DNA of 64,000 bases from Rebecca billardiae RCC1528 (lineage: Eukaryota; Protista; Haptophyta), in NCBI GenBank assembly GCA_965240325.2, contig OZ251233.1:1116001-1180000 (forward strand). The letters are read 5' to 3'. The position numbers and the translations under genes were made by a program. This document shows, one piece after another, positions 3,179 through 15,200 of the stretch (positions are counted from its first letter, which is position 1; each line of letters starts with the position of its first letter). The notes beneath the pieces are model-generated. The model had not been told where the DNA came from, did no database searches, and was given only the letters and a program-made list of their open reading frames with translations.

Positions 3179-6100
3179 ATGCCAGCCGTGGGCACCCCGG
3201 TCGCCGTCCTCTCGCGGCGGCTCTACCCGACCCCGCCGTCGTCGGCGACGACGACGCGCGGCTCTCGTCGCTCAGACACCTCCGTCGCGCCGCGCAGCCC
3301 AGCCAACGCCGGCCGCGCGCGCAAGGACTTGCACGAGGAGCTGGCGGATGCGCGCATCTCGCGCGCAGCCGCCGAGGCTGCGCTGCTCTCGGCACAGGAG
3401 GAGGCGACACGCGCGCACGCCGAGGCCGAGGCGGAGCGCGCGCGCACGCTGCACATCGCCAAGCAGCTCGACGAGGTCCGCCGCCAGCTCGGCGCGAGCG
3501 AGCTCGCGCGCACGCGCGCCGACGAGCGATCAGACCGACTTGCTCACGAGACGCGCGCGCTGAGCGCGCAGCTGACCGAGGCGCTCTCGGCCGCCGATCA
3601 GCGCGCGCGCGAGCTGAGCGCATCGCGCGAGGCGTGTACCACGCTGCAGCACTCGCTCGTGCGCGCGCGCGCGCAGGCGCGCGAGCTCCGGCTGGGCGCA
3701 CGCGCGCAGCGTGACGTGGCGCGCTCGGCGCGCCAGCCGCGAACGCTCTCCGCGGGTGTGCGCGTGGCGCTGTGCGTGCCCTCGGCGGACGGGCTGCTAG
3801 GCGAGTCGGGCGAGCTGTGCGTGACCGGCTGCACGCACGCCTTCATGTGGACCACCGTCGACACGCGCACGCTCCTCGTCGCGCACTCGAGCGCGCAGCG
3901 GCCGCACACATCGCTCGCGCTCGGCGCGGTGAGCGCCCTCAGTGAAGTCTCCGCCGACTCGCGCGTGCGCGCCAGGCTGGCCGCGGCCGGCGGCGTGCCC
4001 GGCCTCTGCTTCGCGCTGCACTTCGGCTCGCGCCGCGGCTCGTCCTCGTGGCTGGCCTTCGCGCCGCTCGCCGACGACGCCCCCTCCGGCGCCGGCGCCG
4101 GCGGCGGAGGCGCGCTCTCGCCTTGCTGGCACTGGATGCATTCGCTGGCAGGCGCGCTTCGGGAGGCGGGGCTGCCGCCGCACGCCGTGGCGAGCCGGGC
4201 GCCGCGGCTGCTCTGGGCGCGCGCGCGCGCCGCGCTCGAGCGCCGCGCCGCCGAGCTCCGCGTCGGCCGCGCGCCCGTGCTGCTCTGCGCGCGCGCCGCC
4301 GCGGCCGCGGCCCTCAGGCGCGCGGACGAGCGTCGCGCGGACGCCGAGGCGCTGCGCGCGCACAAGAGCGCCGAGGTGATGTCGCTCTTCCTCGACGTGC
4401 TCAACTTTCAGCTGCGCGAGGGGTCGGAGCTCGCGCCCGTCACCTTCTGGGCGCAGGCCGTGCCGAGCCTGCGCCGCGCCCTCGAGGACGACGCCCTCGC
4501 CGCGGCGTGCACAGCGCGGCGCGACGCGGCGCACACGCGCCGGCTGCTGCAAAACGCGGTGCACGAGTTCGAACCGGCGCCCGCGGCGCGCGACGCGCTC
4601 GACTGGGCGTGGCGCGCGGGGCTCGAGGGCGGCGGGCTGCCCACGCCCGTGCTGCGCTCGGCCCGCCTGCTCATCTGCAACCGCCGACTCCTCCTCGACC
4701 CCGGGACGTTTCCCGGAAGCGTCGGCGTGCGCGCCTCGCCGGACACAGATGCTCGCGACGGCGACGGCGACGGCGGCGCGCGCGGGACGGAGGCGCGAGC
4801 GGACGGCGCGGAGGAGGGCGGCGCCGCGCCCGCCGAGCCGTGCGCGGCGTGGCTCGTCAGCGCGCAGCTGCAGCCCGCCGTCGATGCGAGCCTACAGCGC
4901 GAGCGCACGGCGCTTGAGCGCGAGCGGCGCGCGCGCGACGCGTCGGCCGCGCGCGCCTCCGGGCGGGTCGACGGCTCGGCCGCCGGCGGCGGCGGCGGCG
5001 CCCAGGGGAACGCGGCCGCGGCCGCCGAGCGCGCGCGCGTCGTGCGGATGCGGGACGAGATCAACTACCGGCTCTCGCGGCTGCAGCTGCCGCGCGCCTC
5101 GGCGCGCTGCGAGGCCGCGCTCGGCGCGTGGCGCCGCGCGCTCGCACCGCCGCCGAGCGCGCAGCTGTGTGCGCGCGTGCAGCTTGACGCCGCGCCCTCG
5201 GCGCCGCGGCTGCTCGTCGTGCCCGCCGGCGCGGAGCTCGAGCTGTGGACGGCGGCGTGCGCGTGCGACGTGGCGATCGCGGGCGCGCACGAGGCGAGGG
5301 TGCTGCCGGGCGAGCCGTGGCGCGCGCTCACGCCGCAGCACGGCGCGCGCGCGTCCATGCGTCTCGCGCTGGTTGTGCCAGGCGCGCTCACCGCCGCGGG
5401 TGCCACCGCCGCGCCGGCCGGCGACGCGCGCGCCGACGGCGCTCAGAGCGCGGCCGAGGCAGAGGGGACGCTGGTCGTGGAGGCGCCCGCGTGGTCGCGC
5501 TCGCACCGCGGCGGCGCGTGCGCCGCGCACACGCCGGTGCCGCGCGCGCAGCTCGACGCTGCACTCCGCAGGTTTGGCCGCGCTGCGTTTCTTCAGGCGC
5601 CGCTGGCGGATGCGGCCTATGAGGCGAAGCTTCGGAGCGCGGAGCGCGAGGCGCAGCTCGCGGCGCACGGGCTGCGCGGTCGCGTGGGCTACGAGCCTGC
5701 CGGCGTGGCCGCGGGGCCCGAGGCCGCCGCGCCCGGCGCGCCGCGGCTGCTGCAGCTGCGGCCTGCCGCCGCGCGCACGGATGGGACGCGCGCCGCTGCG
5801 CCGCCGCCGCCGGCCGACGGCGCCCGCTGGAGCGGCCGTGGCGACTCGCCGCCGCCCATCACGCTCGGCCGGAAGGCCGTGCCGCCGGGCGGCGGCGCGC
5901 CGACTCTGCCGCGCTCGGCAGCGGTGCCCGCACGGCCGGCGTGCGCACTCGCAGCCGACGCGCGCGCGCCCGCGCCCGCGCCCTCGTGCTCGCCGCACGT
6001 GCAACCGCAGCCGCAGCCGCAGCCGCCGCCGCCAATTTCGGTCGGAGGGCAGAGCCCAGAGCAGTCGGGCACGCCGTCCGCCGGCGTCGGTGGGCTCGGC

Positions 6101-8155
6101 GCCGCCCTCCGGCCCGGGGGCGCCACGCCTCTCTCGGCCGCGACCACGTGCGTGCCATCCTCTGCGGCGAGCGCGTCGTCCACTGCCAAGAGCGCGACGG
6201 ACTCGCCCGCGGCGCCGGCTGAGCCTGCGCCCGCGCTGCCGCCGCCGTCTCCCGCGGTCTCGGCGCGCGGCGGGGCGGGGCGCGAGGCGGCGGTGGCTGC
6301 TGGCGCGACGCCGCCCTCCGCCACCGCGAGCGAACGCACGCCGCAGCCGCCGCGCAGCCGGCTGGCGCTCTCCGCGCAGCTCGAGATACTTCTCGGAAAC
6401 TACGTGCGCGCGGCCGCGGAGGCGGTGGGGTGCGCCTCCAGACTCGTCGAGAGTCACGCGGCCGAGCGCGCCGGGCAGCAGGGCAGGGGTGCGCGGGCGG
6501 GGCCGGAGCCGGGCGCCGCCGCCTTGCCGCGCACGCCGCGCACGCCTGCGGGCGGCGGCGCGCGCGCGCGGCACGCGCGCACACTCGGCGACGCCGCGGC
6601 GCGCGTGCGCGCCGCCGCTGACAAGCTACCTTGCCCCGAGCGACCGAGCGTGAAGCGAGCCATCGCGGCGCTGGTCGCACTGCCGTCGAGCGCGCGGGCC
6701 GCGGCGGCGCGCGGCGACGGCGCCGCGCCCGCCGACGAGGCGCTCGGTGGCGTGCGCTCACAGCTGCAGCGCGCGCGCACCTACGCGGCGCGCGCGTGCG
6801 CGGCGGCCGTGCTCGAGGTGCGTGAGAATGCGAGGCAGCGTGCTCGAGCGCGCGCGCGTGCGCCGAGCGCCGGGCACGCGCGTGCGTGGCGTGCGACCGC
6901 TTCGTGAGCGGTGTGCGGTGCGGCGTGCTCGGCTGCGCGTGCGCGCGGCGGCGGCGCCGTTCGCGCGCGCGTGCGCGCTCACGCCGCGCACCCGTTCGCG
7001 CGCGCACGCCGCCCCGCAGGCGGAGGTTCTCGCCGAGGCGCTGGGCACGCTGGAGGAAATGAGCAGCGCGGCCGCAGGCACCCCGGGCGGTGCGCGCGCA
7101 GTGCGCACGCGCGCGCGCCGGCTGCGCCGCCCGCTGCTCAGCTCGGTGTGGGCGCTGCTGGACGAGGTGCTCGTCGAGGAGGGCGGCGCGCCCGCGCCCG
7201 CCGCCGCGGCGCGCGGCGGCGAGCGCGTGCGCGCGGCAGACGGTCTGATCGCTCGGCTTGACGGCGTGTTACGAGCGGTGCGTTGGCGTTGGCGTTGGCG
7301 CGCGCGCGCGCCGCCTCTGCCCTGCGCGCGCGCCCGAACCGCGCCCCGCGCTGCGGTGCGGCTGTGCGGCTGTGTGGCAAGACACGGCTCGCGGTTGCAG
7401 CGTGTCAGGGCGCTGACTTAGATTCGTACCCGCCCGCCCGCGCGCGGCGCACCGCCCGGCAGGCCCAGGACGAGGGTGCGTCCCGCCACGCGCGCGTGCA
7501 GCAGCAGCAGTCGGGCGCGGCCGTCGCAGCCGCGCTGCCCCAGCCCCTGAGCCCGGCATCCCAGCTGCCGTACCACGCGGCGACGAGCCGCGCGCCCGCT
7601 GTGCCGGCGGCTCCGCCCGGCTCGCAGCTGGCGCCACTCGCTACGCCGCAGCGCGCGGCCGCGCCGCCAGCCACCCGTCAGCCCGGGCCGGGCGTCGCGC
7701 CGCACAGCTCGCCGCGCACGCGCGCGGCGCGGCAGCGGCTCAACGAGAGCCTCGACCGGCAGAAGGGTGAGCTGCTGCGCCGGCGCGAGGAGCGGCGGCG
7801 GCGGCAGTCGATGGGTCCGGCGGAGGGGCTCGCGGTGCGCGGCGCCCGGCGGCGCCAGTCCCTCGAGCCAGCGCTGCTGGGCGAGCCCACGGGCTTCGCC
7901 GAGAGCGGCAGCCTCGAAGCCGATGAGGCGGACGGCTGCGGCGGCGCGCCGCCAGCCGGCGCGCACCGGCGCCAGACGCTCGGCGCTGTGGACGCCAACG
8001 CACTCCACGCGTACCGCCGCCGCATTGGCTTGGACTGCCTGCCGACGCGTGAGAGGCAGCTGCCAGAGGAGGACGATGGTGATGGCGGGCATCATCGCAT
8101 TGCTGTCGACGATGCTCTTGCCGTCCCGCACGGCGTGAGGCCACCACCGCAGTGA
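3179..8155 (+). CDS. Large hypothetical protein with N-terminal coiled coil and low-complexity regions; 3 predicted exons (3179-6817, 7020-7277, 7463-8155)
   Basis: Long ORF with an N-terminal coiled coil. GT-AG introns 6818-7019 and 7278-7462 join three ORF-track frames in phase. Start ATG 3179 is inferred. Confidence 0.6.
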
Positions 8156-8965: not shown

Positions 8966-9649
8966 CTAGGCGGCGCCGCTGAGAGAGTCGGCGAGCTCGC
9001 CCTCCTCCGCGAGCTCCTTCACCACGTCCAGCCCCCCGACCAGCTTGCCGTGCGCGTACAGCTGCGGGTAGGTCGGCCAGTTGGAGAACGTCTTGAGGCC
9101 CTGCCGCACCTCCTCGTCCGAGAGGATGTCGAACGAGCCAAACTCGACGGCCTGCGCGCGCAGCAGCTCGACGATCTGCCGGCTGAAGCCGCAGCGCGGC
9201 GCGTCCGGCGAGCCCTTCATGAAGAGCATCGTCGGGCTCGACTCGATCAGGCCCTTCAGCCGCTCGTCGAGCGTCTGCGGCTTGCCGCCCGCCGCCGCGC
9301 CTGCCGCCGGCACGCCCGCCTCGGCGCCGACAACCCTGCCGACGAGCGCGACGAGCTCGGGCGCGTTCGCGCCGACGAGGCGATCCGTCGGCGCTCCCGA
9401 CTTGAGCACGACGAACGTCGGCACCGTCTCCACCTGCAGCCGCTCCGCGACCGCCTCCGCCTCCTCCGACTCCACCTGCACGAACGCGACGCCGGCGCGC
9501 GCGCCGTGCTCCCCGGCCAGGCGGGCGAAGACCTCGTCCATCTGCACGCATGGCTCCGCCCACGACGCGCGGAAGTTGCACACGCACACATCCTTGCCCG
9601 CGGTCGCCGCGTCGAACGCGTCGGCGGATGCCACGCTGACGACGCCCAT
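8966..9649 (-). CDS. GLRX3: Monothiol glutaredoxin, Trx + Grx (GLRX3/PICOT, yeast Grx3/4 type)
   Basis: Trx-like domain with WAEPC, followed by a Grx domain with LFMKGSPDAPRCGFS, NWPTYPQLY and GGLD. Confidence 0.93.
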   Translation of the reverse strand: MGVVSVASADAFDAATAGKDVCVCNFRASWAEPCVQMDEVFARLAGEHGARAGVAFVQVESEEAEAVAERLQVETVPTFVVLKSGAPTDRLVGANAPELVALVGRVVGAEAGVPAAGAAAGGKPQTLDERLKGLIESSPTMLFMKGSPDAPRCGFSRQIVELLRAQAVEFGSFDILSDEEVRQGLKTFSNWPTYPQLYAHGKLVGGLDVVKELAEEGELADSLSGAA

Positions 9650-9688
9650 GCTGACGCGCGCTGTGCCACGCTTGGCCGCGGCGGCGAG

Positions 9689-10039
9689 CGGCAGCGCTAA
9701 ATCAGCCCGGGCTGATTTAAGCTTATCTCAGCCCGGGCTGATTTAAGCCCTTAAATCAGCCCGGGCTGAGATAAGCTCCGCGCGAGCTTATCTCAGCCCG
9801 GGCTGAGATAAGCGCTTATCTCAGCCCAGCGGCTCGCGACTCGGCCACCGTGGACTCGGAGCGCACGTCGCGCGGTGCGGCCCGCCCGCTCCATGGCTGC
9901 ACGCGCTGCTGTGTCTTCGGTGGCCACAGGGTGAAGTGCGCTGAGTCTAGTGGCGGGCGCCCAGCTCCACCCACCCCCTTCTCCCTGGCCCGCCCCGCCT
10001 GCCCTCGCCCGCATCGGATGCCTTCCTCGCGCATGCAAC
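9689..10039 (+). repeat. Left terminal inverted repeat with palindrome array
   Basis: Begins CGGCAGCGCTAAATCAGCCCGGGCTGATTT. It is the reverse complement of 11830-12180, with no mismatch seen by eye. Confidence 0.93.
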
Positions 10040-11829
10040 GGCCTCAGCCAACGCCATTGTTCCACCATCGATTCCACCATCGACGGTCGCGGGTACTTGT
10101 ACGTCGTGTACTGTACATGTGTGTCATGTGTAATCGCACGCATCTGGCCACGGCCCACGTGCACCTGTCTGCCGTGTGCCGTCGCCCTTGTACCGCGTTG
10201 CCCTTGTACCGTTCGCGCGTTGCGGCATGTGCTTGCCCAGCTTGGCATACTTGCCGGTCACGCTCGACGCTGGATCAGCCAGTCATCGCGATCCCGTCAG
10301 ATCGAAACGGTCCCTTCGCGCGGCGCACTACTCTGCGCGGCGGCTGCCGGTTCATGACCGAGCTTGGACCATCAGCTGACAGCTGTGGTGTGCGGCTCGC
10401 TGCGTCTCAAGCGTGGCAGGCGCTTCGGCAGAGTAATACACTGTCGACGGTCGTGGCGCCGCAGCTGGTGGGCTCACCGGCGCCGTCGCGCTCGCAGCTT
10501 TCGGCGCGCTTGGCGAGCACGCCAAGGTCGCCGCGCGCACCGTGGTCCGCGTGCACACAACGGCCGCCGCGCGCGCCGCAGCCGTCTTGCGCGCCGCAGC
10601 CGGCGAGCGCGCCGCGGCCGGCGAGCGCGCCGCGGCTGCTGAGCGCGCCCGGCCGGCGAGCGCGCCGCGGCCGGCGAGTGCGCCGCGGCTGCTGCGCGCG
10701 CCCGGCCGGTGAGCGCGCCGCGGCTGCCGCGCGCCGCGCGGCTGGCGATTGCGCCGCGGCTGCCACGCGCGCTGCGGCCGGTAAGCGCGCCACGGCGGCA
10801 GACAGCGTAACTCGGCCGTCGCGCCCGGCCGGCGAGCGCGCCGTGGCTGCTGCGCGCGCCGCGGCTGCTGCGCGCGCCGCGGCCGGCGAGCGCGCCGAGG
10901 CCGACCAACGCGCCGCGACCGCCCCGCGCACGGCGACCGAAGGCGAGTCTCGGTGGCGGATAGCGAGCTTGCCGCTGCGGCTAGTGAGCGCGCCGCAACC
11001 GGCGCGGATGGATGGTGCAGCCGGGGCTTGCGCCACCGCGACCGGTGAGCTGGCCGCGCCAGCATGCGTAGGTATTGGCGAGCGCGCCACCGCAACCGGC
11101 GAGCGCGCACCGCACGGGCCACAGATGCCCATTGGTCCAACGCCGCAGGTGCCCATCAAGCCTGGCGCCAACACGTGACAGTTGCGCGATGAGGCTGAGC
11201 GTGCTCGCCGGCCGCTGCGCGCTCACTGGCCGCGGCGGCGCGCTCGCTCGCTATCCGCCACAGACTAGCCTTCGGTCGTCGCGCACGGCCGCGGCGCGCT
11301 GGTCCGCCGCGGCGCGCGCGGCAGCCACGGCGCGCGCGGCAACCGCGGCGCGCGCGGCGGCCACCGCGCGCGTGGCGAATGCGGCGGCCGCTGCGTGCGT
11401 GCGGACCGCGGCGCACACCGCAACCTTAGCTTGCTGTCCGTGCGCACCAGCCCCTGAGCCGCGGCACGCGCTGCGAGCTTGGCGTGCTCGCCGTGCGCGC
11501 CGACAGCTGCGGGCGTGCCGGCGTCGGCGCGCCCACTAGCCGCAGCGCCATGATCGTCCATGGAGCTGCGCCGGTGCCCATGCCTGTGCCGCTGGCACCG
11601 GTACGCCCGCGCGCGGCGGCCGCGGTGGCAACGTTCAGCACATTTTGAACAACGTGCAATGGCAACAGCACACAACCGACTGTAGCGCACGGGCCGTGTT
11701 CACCCGCGTGCGACTACGCGCGGACATGGTCAACTGGCGAACGTCGATGGTGCGTCCATGGTGTTGGCTGCATGCTTCTCATGCGGGCAGCAAGTCCACA
11801 ACTCACACAAGCCGAGTTGCCGCCGTGGA

Positions 11830-12180
11830 GTTGCATGCGCGAGGAAGGCATCCGATGCGGGCGAGGGCAGGCGGGGCGGGCCAGGGAGAAGGGGGTGGGT
11901 GGAGCTGGGCGCCCGCCACTAGACTCAGCGCACTTCACCCTGTGGCCACCGAAGACACAGCAGCGCGTGCAGCCATGGAGCGGGCGGGCCGCACCGCGCG
12001 ACGTGCGCTCCGAGTCCACGGTGGCCGAGTCGCGAGCCGCTGGGCTGAGATAAGCGCTTATCTCAGCCCGGGCTGAGATAAGCTCGCGCGGAGCTTATCT
12101 CAGCCCGGGCTGATTTAAGGGCTTAAATCAGCCCGGGCTGAGATAAGCTTAAATCAGCCCGGGCTGATTTAGCGCTGCCG
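11830..12180 (-). repeat. Right terminal inverted repeat with palindrome array
   Basis: Ends AAATCAGCCCGGGCTGATTTAGCGCTGCCG. It is the reverse complement of 9689-10039. Confidence 0.93.
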
Positions 12181-12245
12181 GGCGGCGAGCGGGCGGTCCA
12201 GCCACCGAGCCACGCAGACGCCGCGGCCGCTCCCGGTCGGTCCCG

Positions 12246-15200
12246 ATGGCGCGCGCTCCGCCACGTGTCGTGCTGATTGCGTGCGCGCTGGCGCTGTCCG
12301 CGCCAGCGCGCGCGCGGCAGGTCGGCGTCGGCGCGGGCGGCCCCGAGCGCACGCCCAGCCACGTCGAGGCGCTCTCCGCCTGGCGCGGCGGCCGGGACGA
12401 CCGCTCGACCGACCCGGACGCCGTGCGGCCGATCAGCCCGGCGCACGAGGCGTATCTGCACGACTTTGAGCAGTTCCTCGAGACGTTCGCGGCGGAGCTC
12501 GAGAAGGCGTGCACGACGGACAAGGGCGGGCTGTTCGGCGGCGGCGCGTCCAAGAAGGCCCACCTCAAGCCCGACCGCGTCGCGATGCAGCAGGCCTACA
12601 ACCACATGTACGATTGCTATGCCGAGGCGCTCACGCGCGCGCGCACGCCGCAGCAGGTGGTGATGGCGGCGATGCAGGTGCGCGCCGCCGGAGCGCGGGG
12701 CGGCCGAGCGCGGCGCGTTTCGGACCTGCCGCCACTCGCTCGCCGGCCGCGCTGCCTGCGCCCTGCGCCGCCGAGGCCACGCGCGGCGCGCGCGCTCGCT
12801 CACGAGCGCGCGCCGCGACTGCCGCGCGCGCATGCGCCCGCGCGCGCAGGCGGTGAGCGAGGGGAGCCTCCTGCTGAGTGGCGAGGAGGCGCCGGCGGCG
12901 TGCGCCGCGCCCGTCTCGGAGGCGGACCGCGATCGGCTCCGCGCCGTGCACGCGCGCATGACCGCCAAGGACGCAGGGACCGTCAGCACGCGCCTCCGTC
13001 CAGTCCGGAAAGTTTTCGACGCTGTGCTCCTGCCCGGAGTGACGGGGCTGTGCCTCGGGCTGCTGGACGACCACCTGGGCGGCGGCGGGGACGGCGAGCC
13101 CGGCGCGCTGGAGGAGCTCAAGGCGCGCCTCGCAGACGCCGAGGCCTTCGCGGCCAACCTTACTGCCGCGCGGGGCGAGGCAGAGTCTGCTGCGGCCGAG
13201 GCGGTGGCCAGCTCGGAAGCCAGCCTGGCGGAGCTGCACTCGGCGCTGCAGGAGGCGCGGCTGCGCGCGGCGGAGGCGCACGCGAACGCCAAGGCGCGCG
13301 CACGCGCCGCGCGCCGGCCGCGGGCCCGACCCCGCGCCCCCGCCCACGCGCTGCGCTGGCGCGCCTGCCGCCGCCCCGCCTGACTCGCACTGCCGTGCCG
13401 CACTGCGCGCCTGCGCTGTCTGCCACGACCGACCTGGGCTCCCTTCGCGCAGGCGGCGGCGATGGACGAGGTCTCGGCGATGGCCGAGGCGCACGCGCGC
13501 GCCCTCGCCGACGAGAGCGACCGCGCCGAGGCCGCGGCCGCCGAGGCCGACGCCGCGCGCGCCAGCGCGGACGCGGCGCGCGCCGCTCTGGACTCGGCGC
13601 GCGCTGACGCGGCGCGTGCTCGCTCCGAGCTGGCGCAAGCGCGCGCGCAGGCCGCGCAAAGCGCCGAGCGCTGCGCGGCGGCGGAGCAGCAGCTCGCGCA
13701 GGCGCGCCACGCGGCGCACGAGTCGCAGGCCGCCTCGATCGCCGCGCTCCGCGCTGAGCTCGATCAGGCGCGCGCCGAGGCGCAGCGCGCGGCGCACGCG
13801 CTGCAGCGCGAGCGTGATCGCGCCTCGGCCGCGGAGGCGGCGGTGGCTGAGGCGCGCGCCGCCGAGGCCGCGGCGAGCGCCACGGTGGAGGCACTCCGCA
13901 CGCAGCTGGCCGCAGCGAACGAGGTGGCGGCCGCGGCGGCAGCGCTGGAGGAGAGCGCCGCCGCCGTGTCGTCTGGCGCGGCCACGCAGGCTGAGACGAC
14001 GGCAGCGGCCGGCGGCGGCGGCGGCGGCGGCGGCGCGACCGATGGCGCGGCTGCGGCCGCCGCGGCGTCCGACTCGACGGCGGCGGCCCCACCGCTGTCT
14101 GCCAGCACGGAGGCCGAGGAGGACCCGTGGGCGGCGGCCGAGGCGGAGCCCACCGGCGCCGACGGCGCCCCATCCGGCGCTCAGCTGGAGCAGCAGACAC
14201 AGGGCCCGCAGTCGGCCGCGGCGGCGCAGGCGGCTCAGGGTGCCGCAGTGGGCGCGGCGCAGCAGCCCTCGGCCGCGGCGCTCGGCGAGGCCGAGCGTGC
14301 CGAGCTGAGCTCGAAGCTGCGGCACGCGCAGGCGCTCGCGGCGAGCCTGCGCTCGCAGCTCGACGCAGCCACCACCGAGCTCGCGGAGGCGCGCGCCGAG
14401 TGCGCGCGCGCGCAGTCGCGCGCCGACGCGGCCGAGGCCCGCGCACTGGAGGCGGAGTCGGATGCTGCCAGCCGCGCGCGCGCGATGGAGGAGGGCGCGG
14501 GGGCGAGCGCCGAGCGCGTCTCGGCGCTGGAGGCGGAGGTTCGGAGCGCGAGGGCGGAGTGTAACCGCGGCGCGGAGCGCGTGCGCGAGCTCGAGTCCCA
14601 GCTCGCCGCGCGCACGCAGGCGGAGACGGGCGCGTCCGCCGCCGCCACCGCGCCTGCGCCCGCGCCCGCGCCCGCGCGCGCGCCTGCCGGCGCTGACTGG
14701 GGCGCTGGCGTGCCTGGAGGCGTAGCGGCCACCGAGCCGGCGCCCGCCCAGGCCGCGCCCGGCGGCGGCGCGATGGGCGGCGCGGGCGCTCTGGGCGCGG
14801 GCGCGCAGAGCAGCGCCCACGCGCCGTGGCCCCCAGCACGGACCATCACCAGTTCAGGCCCGGCGCTGGGCACCCCTGCTGCAGCCGCTGCGGCGGGCGG
14901 CGCGGCCGACGCGCGCGGCGCGGCGGCCGGGCAGGCCGGTGCGGGCGGCGCGGTCGATCACGGGCTCTCGGCGGCCGGGTTTGCGAGGCCGCCTGCGCCT
15001 CCGGCGTCGCTGGGCTCAGGCGGGCTACCGCTGTCATCGGGCGCCGGGCCGGCGGCGCAGGCGCCCGTGGGCGTTGGCAGCGCCTCGGCAGCGCCGCTGC
15101 CGCCCTCGCCGAGCGCGGCAGGGTCGGCGCAGCCGCCCCCCGGTGCGGGCAGCGGCATGCCGGGCGCGAGTGCCGCCGGCGCGGGCTATGGGTACGGCGG

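Follow-up and report, generated by a model that had tools for sequence, protein, structure and literature searches.

The window analyzed here, a stretch of 64,000 nt (G000:C16:1116001-1180000) in a 72-Mb assembly of 41 contigs, harbors at 9680-12189 a mobile element that is very probably a copy of a young, non-autonomous, foldback-type family of Mutator-like elements (MULEs) in a GC-rich alga. The element has very recently been copied to at least 20 loci, insertions of the family favor the palindromic sequence NNCGSCGNN and positions a short distance 5' of start codons, and a gene predicted to encode a MULE-type transposase is found in a related element. The family documents a Mutator-type system that is currently, or was very recently, active in such an alga. 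Its description is of use for the repeat annotation of the genome and for judging insertional promoter effects, here on a thioredoxin-glutaredoxin gene, and the family is a potential tool for transposon tagging.

MULEs have target-site duplications (TSDs) of 8-11 bp, terminal inverted repeats (TIRs) that often extend over hundreds of bp and a MULE transposase with a DDE catalytic triad, which in many clades is accompanied by SWIM or FAR1 domains (PMC6446971; PMC5499845). In such clades the SWIM finger is C-terminal, and a DNA-binding domain of FAR1/WRKY type is found at the N-terminus. An earlier reading of the window (hereafter, the original prediction) had pointed out the element as a recent, non-autonomous insertion of this superfamily in an algal genome.

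Architecture of the element in the window

The two arms of the element are identical, as had been claimed: aligned with the reverse complement of 11830-12180, the segment 9689-10039 matches at 351 of 351 positions. A repeat finder returned slightly longer arms of 358 nt (9682-10039 and 11830-12187, 99%). The predicted exact duplication on the two flanks is present as well (Table 1). Its length is ambiguous in the window copy alone, where the base after the TSD is C at both ends and either 9 or 10 bp could be read, and it is the remaining copies that settle it at 9 bp.

Each TIR bears CGGCAGCGC at its outer end, followed by four perfect TCAGCCCGGGCTGA palindromes and one half-site, and thus contains nine TCAGCCC/GGGCTGA half-sites, or four and a half palindromes. 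Eight TCAGCCCGGGCTGA palindromes were observed in the window, as compared with none expected by chance. As single-stranded DNA, the outer 147 nt of the TIR give a folding energy of -60.6 kcal/mol (z = -12.2 relative to shuffled sequence). Foldback-type elements are those whose TIRs are made of subterminal repeats able to form secondary structure (PMC5499845), and the window element is organized in this manner.

In the interior, a tandem-repeat search found an 18-bp minisatellite that extends over 20.3 units at 10561-10921, with about five inverted units at 11288-11376. Since minisatellite units are present in both orientations, the interior is itself partly palindromic, and the repeat finder returned additional inverted pairs there. 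None of the open reading frames (ORFs) of the interior has a Pfam match, in agreement with the claims that the element has no transposase ORF and is non-autonomous; the interior has no recognizable coding capacity. The capture of gene fragments is frequent among MULEs (PMC6446971), and a Pack-MULE whose interior was taken from a host gene would have to be considered. Such an origin is very improbable and was rejected, as neither Pfam nor a genome search revealed recognizable host-gene fragments in the interior. Its unique segments match only copies of the family, non-family matches being confined to the 18-bp minisatellite. In addition, an old, 69%-identical relic of a family arm already contains the left unique segment, and a stretch of approximately 690 bp within the interior has its homologue in the subterminal arm of a MULE-bearing copy on contig C10 (see below). 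Classification as a miniature inverted-repeat transposable element (MITE), which would call for a length below ~800 bp and a high copy number, was rejected for an element of 2.43-2.50 kb with only ~22 copies.

The minisatellite is not specific to the family. This 18-bp GC-rich repeat (consensus CGGCCGGCGAGCGCGCCG) recurs at many unrelated loci genome-wide, for instance at G000:C1:2612543-2615999, C17:1193589-1195718, C34:438874-439737 and C37:148558-149667.

Copies, target-site duplications and target sites

When the TIR was compared with the genome, as the original prediction had suggested, 114 matches were found, and searches for the 31-nt terminus with up to three mismatches yielded 24 hits per strand, as against none for the reversed control. 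The 72-Mb genome thus holds ~22 near-full copies, with a unit length of ~2.43-2.50 kb, and 48 termini. The full-length interior is found at 21 loci with 95-100% identity, and partial and more diverged copies exist besides. Outside this genome, the TIR palindrome was absent from metagenome and viral contigs, a weak negative since near relatives may be masked in these collections. More than 20 copies are dispersed over at least 14 contigs of the genome, and each is bordered by a 9-bp TSD of its own and by unique sequence. This distribution bears on the possibility that the structure arose as a fold-back artefact of the assembly or through local inverted duplication, of which the lack of other copies had been named as the sign. 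Chimeric long reads can yield perfect inverted arms of 351 bp, and one copy on contig C19, whose flanks are 100% identical to those of two other copies, is possibly misassembled, but the dispersed copies refute an artefact for the family, and this explanation is extremely improbable.

The tabulation of TSDs over the copies gave 9 bp in 17 of the 18 that could be tested. Perfect 9-bp TSDs flank 13 simple copies (2426-2498 bp) and four copies with nested inserts, on C11, C14, C24 and C13. Among MULEs the TSD is typically 9 bp within the 8-11 bp range and constant within a family, which is what was found here, the one exception having chimeric flanks. Merlin elements generate TSDs of 8-9 bp, hAT elements of 8 bp, and P/Galileo-type foldback elements of 7-8 bp. 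The superfamily is not decided by TSD length alone, and foldback architecture is also found in the P superfamily (PMC5499845), so that membership in another superfamily with long TIRs and a similar TSD, such as one of these, has to be weighed. This alternative is nevertheless highly improbable, given that the TSD is exactly 9 bp in all 17 intact pairs and that the sole coding relative of the family carries a MULE domain and a putative SWIM finger. The TSDs, together with the presence of a MULE-domain gene in a relative whose TIR is 86% identical and ends in the same 31 nt, bear out the assignment to the Mutator superfamily.

Alignment of the 17 reconstructed empty sites gave the palindromic consensus NNCGSCGNN. 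The core CGSCG occupies TSD positions 3-7 in 12 of these sites, as compared with 2.7% of the positions in the window (binomial P ~7e-16), and G-S-C is found at TSD positions 4-6 in all but one of them. A symmetric target of this kind would be compatible with a symmetric transposase complex.

Five pairs of termini are markedly longer than the element, namely those on C11 (11.1 kb), C14 (5.6 kb), C24 (5.7 kb), C13 (4.1 kb) and C10 (8.4 kb). The first four were examined as possible autonomous copies and rejected: they are ordinary copies, split by four mutually unrelated inserts, and their outer 9-bp TSDs match. Among the long pairs, a transposase is found only in that of C10, which has no TSD.

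All four nested inserts sit in the palindrome array of a TIR, which is ~140 bp long, at element positions 125, 2406, 2458 and ~2470. The arrays make up only ~11% of the element, yet they hold every one of these inserts, and they are also the parts most frequently deleted in truncated copies. They look like hot spots for both insertion and deletion. The nested insert of the C14 copy (3.07 kb, L036:690-3765; G000:C14 ~2084689-2087764) belongs to a separate foldback-like family; it has TIRs of its own (926 bp, 99% identical), termini TCAGGCGAG...CTCGCCTGA, and an apparent 4-bp TSD (AAGC).

Age of the copies and homogenisation of the TIRs

In alignments, identity between copies ranges from 98.4 to 100%, and three groups of copies that are 100% or nearly identical are found at separate loci with distinct TSDs. 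Together, these features indicate very recent transposition. The window copy forms a lineage of its own, with nearest relatives that are 99.5% identical to it and differ in 26 alignment columns, including a 9-bp indel.

Perfectly identical arms are found in the window copy only. In the other copies, the arms share 342-348 identities over 353-359 columns, and in one rearranged copy (L050) 278 of 421. As the differences between left and right TIRs are common to otherwise identical copies, they were inherited rather than acquired after insertion. The use of TIR identity as a measure of age was therefore rejected, since identical sister copies keep fixed left/right differences. The left arm of the window copy carries states that mark the right arms of other copies, which indicates that its arms have been homogenised, for example by conversion within the element. 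Thus, the predicted recent insertion is sustained by the near-identity of the copies, whereas the perfect identity of the TIRs reflects homogenisation and not age. The family is also old in this genome, as a 69%-identical relic of one arm is present at ~C24:731590-732555.

Candidate source of transposase

A genome-wide scan with the Pfam MULE domain (PF10551) identified two loci, and a protein search with the domain of one of them, on C10, returned the same two. The C10 domain (C10:1918801-1919085) lies between a left terminus of the family at C10:1914372 and a right terminus at C10:1922781. The 8.4-kb structure so delimited is composite, with a copy of the 2.5-kb element and a distinct, B-type element joined head-to-head inside the palindrome array; both inner termini are gone (Table 1). 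The relationship of the B-type element to the family is seen in its right TIR, which is 345 bp long, 86% identical to the TIR of the window and identical to it over the 31-nt terminus, and in the adjacent sequence, of which ~690 bp are 80% identical to element positions 521-1215. All palindromic half-sites are common to the C10 element and the family. Long TIRs shared between autonomous and non-autonomous members are a property of MULEs, and the 351-bp TIR of the window has counterparts of 86-90% identity both in the C10 copy with the MULE gene and in a variant on C24.

The coding part of the C10 element (4.9 kb) is single-copy in the genome. It contains three long ORFs in three frames, which can be reconciled by three GT..AG introns of 131, 136 and 118 nt with GTGCAC or GTGCGC as donors. 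The MULE domain, for which a search among the copies had been proposed, lies in predicted exon 2 (L033:4930-5400) and scores 41.2 bits, the cut-off being 27.6; the candidate catalytic aspartates, in VYDDTF and LITDGD, fall within the match. The end of exon 1 has no Pfam match; among the named clusters of the Atlas it comes closest to FAR1, AFT and ZSWIM3_N (0.90-0.93), a lead only. The 18-bp minisatellite is also found within exon 1 (L033:3520-3880), where it would code for Ala/Gly/Arg-rich repeats. Possession of a member with PF10551 is a further property of MULE families, and here it is the C10 element, itself terminally damaged, that provides it.

The second MULE gene, on the minus strand of G000:C23 at ~327006-330119 (L039:2006-5119), is an intronless ORF of 1037 aa with a MULE match of 48 bits, and its domain is 31% identical to that of C10. 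As its 8-kb surroundings have no match to the element, it was rejected as a partner of the family. An adjoining ORF of 990 aa has a weak match to Rad21/Rec8. The C10 gene would thus be the only plausible source of transposase in the genome, as a candidate.

A number of observations weigh against this reading of the family and its source. The copy at C19:1152058 lacks a TSD. Over 1.5 kb, the sequence to its left matches the reverse complement of that to the right of the C7:780459 copy at 100% identity, and on its right side it has a flank in common, again at 100%, with the C19:1140855 copy, located 11 kb away; the copies that share flanks span G000:C19:1140855-1154536 and C7:780459-782937. It may have arisen either by ectopic recombination between identical copies or by misassembly. 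No empty allele of the window insertion was present at a second locus in the assembly, and the exact empty-site junction was not found in metagenome contigs. The C10 element that bears the MULE gene falls short of a clean autonomous copy. The outer flanks of the composite differ (CCCGGCGCC on one side and CCGCTGCCC on the other) and thus form no TSD, which, together with the head-to-head join, indicates a secondary fusion of two insertions in which the B-type element, now attached to a truncated 2.5-kb copy, lost its left terminus. The identity of its TIR to that of the window is just 86%, and past the array most of its left inner arm shows no relationship to the right one. As for the gene, the four-exon model consists of predicted splicing, with exons that were examined individually. 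The SWIM match in exon 4 scores 17.7 bits (E = 0.0026), below the cut-off of 19.6, with a CxC...CxH motif present, and the candidate catalytic glutamate, in TRGESINS of exon 3, comes from a weak alignment (E = 0.01) just 3' of the C23 MULE domain.

These points could mean that the family consists of genuine transposons with a 9-bp TSD, but that the C10 MULE gene is dead or an unrelated passenger adjacent to an end of the family, the true source being missing from the assembly or too diverged. The lack of one terminus and of a TSD in the composite, a TIR identity of 86% and not ~99%, the diverged left inner arm, the single-copy state of the gene and the failure to find an A-type autonomous copy in the genome would all fit this view. 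It is nonetheless unlikely, given the identical 31-nt terminus and the half-sites and ~690 bp of subterminal sequence that the C10 element shares with the family. Moreover, the gene is intact over four predicted exons with canonical introns, the sole other MULE locus has no element match around it, and the existence of 100%-identical copies calls for transposase activity in the very recent past. The preferred reading remains that the C10 gene may supply the transposase, its own element being probably immobile by itself. The active autonomous partner foreseen by the original prediction is thus matched in part, by a single MULE-bearing relative that lacks both a left terminus and a TSD.

Proposed origin and mechanism of the 2.5-kb form

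In the C24 variant, the TIR and the subterminal arm of the B type are found at either side as mirror images, and the window family retains the B-type arm together with extra unique segments. This suggests that one arm of a B-type element was duplicated in inverted orientation to give the non-autonomous foldback derivatives, and the 2.5-kb form may accordingly descend from an autonomous element of that type.

Transposition would depend on a transposase acting in trans, most likely the product of the single-copy C10 gene. The protein would bind each TIR at its terminal motif CGGCAGCGC and at its nine TCAGCCC/GGGCTGA half-sites. Excision may then proceed by DDE chemistry, the flanking DNA forming hairpins in the manner demonstrated for Muta1, and reinsertion by a symmetric transposase multimer would involve cuts staggered by 9 bp. 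A more far-reaching proposal, which can be put forward only tentatively, is that the whole young family is now driven by this one single-copy MULE gene, stationary because its own element has lost a terminus, and homes to CGSCG in the very short promoters and 5' untranslated regions of a compact algal genome, including bidirectional promoters, with its symmetric ends facing both genes. If so, the symmetric ends could rewire the expression of both adjoining genes, and the family would serve as a naturally occurring tagging system of two components in a GC-rich alga.

Comparison with known systems

Maize elements of the Mu1 type and their partner MuDR have a 9-bp TSD and TIRs of a few hundred bp; non-autonomous copies outnumber autonomous ones, and they insert near the 5' ends of genes. 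The window family resembles them in these four respects of design, no similarity of sequence being expected. It differs in its candidate transposase, predicted from a four-exon gene of ~1,348 codons with a FAR1-like N-terminus (a lead only), and in the CGSCG target, which is family-specific.

The Foldback (FB) elements of Drosophila combine foldback architecture, a 9-bp TSD and minisatellite arrays close to the ends. The window family shares the architecture, the TSD length and minisatellite arrays near its ends with FB, and also with Rehavkus, for which a 9-bp TSD, TIRs of 26-400 bp and a minisatellite are reported (PMC6446971 Table 1). In contrast, Rehavkus has a PHD finger and is limited to animals, whereas the C10 partner has a putative SWIM finger (a sub-cut-off match) and a FAR1-like domain (a lead only).

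Muta1 of Aedes aegypti is a type 2 foldback element of which non-autonomous derivatives occur naturally; its terminal motif, which is palindromic, and nine repeats in the subterminal region promote the binding of transposase as well as cleavage and excision (PMC5499845). Muta1 and Muta1NA1 (PMC5499845, PMC5225508) are similar to the window family in that their long TIRs consist of a short terminal motif and about nine foldable subterminal units, and also in their TSDs of 8-9 bp, palindromic ends and non-autonomous derivatives mobilised in trans. However, the TIR of Muta1 is 145 bp long and has direct 12-bp repeats, whereas that of the window family is 351 bp long with palindromes in inverted pairs, centred on CCCGGG. 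Unlike Muta1, the window family has an internal minisatellite, a second layer of inverted repeats and an algal host, and it is known here from sequence alone.

Among algal elements, a diatom MULE with ~200-bp TIRs, 9-bp TSDs and MULE and SWIM domains has been seen jumping in culture (bioRxiv 10.1101/2023.01.02.522487). This element of Phaeodactylum tricornutum and the MULE groups 37 and 38 of diatoms and red algae (PMC6446971) share with the window family an algal host, TIRs of at least ~200 bp, 9-bp TSDs, a MULE transposase (with SWIM, a sub-cut-off match in the C10 gene) and signs of current activity. They are autonomous, ~3.7 kb long and low in GC, whereas the window family is a GC-rich, non-coding, 2.5-kb foldback derivative. 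Its design is the same as that of known foldback MULEs and does not alter the understanding of how Mutator elements work. The family stands out by its CCCGGG-centred palindrome array, by its CGSCG target and by having a single candidate source whose own element is terminally damaged.

Genomic context

The window copy is inserted in a gap of ~95 bp, the pre-insertion spacing of two ATGs, between a gene for a protein with thioredoxin and glutaredoxin domains and a divergent ORF, itself a putative gene (Table 1). GC content ranges from 62 to 81% across the window; the region of this ORF is 77% GC, and long ORFs arise there by chance. Six termini of the family lie 33-120 nt from the ATG of genes that are supported by Pfam and point away from the element, a number that is a lower bound, as only ORFs with Pfam matches were counted. 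MULEs prefer to insert near genes (PMC10401008, PMC6446971), and the position of these six termini 5' of genes follows this behavioral trait, which is not strictly a defining one.

Table 1. Features of the element, its neighborhood and related loci. Positions without prefix are those of the window.
Feature	Position	Strand	Evidence or remarks
Left TSD copy, 9 bp	9680..9688	.	GGCGGCGAG; matches 12181-12189 exactly; fits target consensus NNCGSCGNN
Left TIR, 351 bp	9689..10039	+	Sequence, repeat finder, alignment to right arm
Left TIR, terminal motif	9689-9697		CGGCAGCGC
Left TIR, palindrome array	~9698-9827
Left TIR, inner part	9828-10039		Non-repetitive
Non-coding interior, 1790 bp	10040..11829	.	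Unique segments, 18-bp minisatellite, ~5 inverted units
Right TIR, 351 bp	11830..12180	-	Alignment, repeat finder, palindrome count
Right TSD copy, 9 bp	12181..12189	.	GGCGGCGAG; sequence
Host gene, thioredoxin and glutaredoxin domains	8966..9649	-	Pfam: Glutaredoxin 67 bits, Thioredoxin 48 bits (from residue 5); ATG at 9649
Flanking ORF, 453 codons, putative gene	12246..13607	+	No Pfam match; ATG 65 nt from terminus
Terminus to ATG, thioredoxin-glutaredoxin (window)			39 nt, TSD counted
Terminus to ATG, Mem_trans			33 nt
Terminus to ATG, NUDIX			48 nt
Terminus to ATG, TPR-CS-SGS			74 nt
Terminus to ATG, GT2			86 nt
Terminus to ATG, HNH-UvrD			120 nt
Copy with nested insert, C11	G000:C11:2348636-2359755
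Copy with nested insert, C14	G000:C14:2084564-2090122
Copy with nested insert, C13	G000:C13:890091-894176
Copy with nested insert, C24	G000:C24:1321190-1326909
C10 composite, 8.4 kb	L033:573-8982 = G000:C10:1914372-1922781		Two intact outer termini
C10 composite, part 1	L033:573-2996		98.6% copy of the 2.5-kb element minus its final 46 bp
C10 composite, part 2	L033:2997-8982		Distinct B-type element
C10 gene, predicted exons	L033:3131-4777, 4909-5380, 5517-5789, 5908-7562		Total 4047 nt = 1349 codons including stop

For the light-harvesting chlorophyll-binding (LHC) family, at least 60 matches were obtained in the genome, and these identify the host as a photosynthetic eukaryote and agree with the algal host that had been predicted. 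Many of the LHC genes are seemingly intronless and are arranged in tight, near-identical inverted or tandem pairs (G000:C12, C7, C10, C13), such as those at C12:2166961/2168133 and C10:552632/554040.

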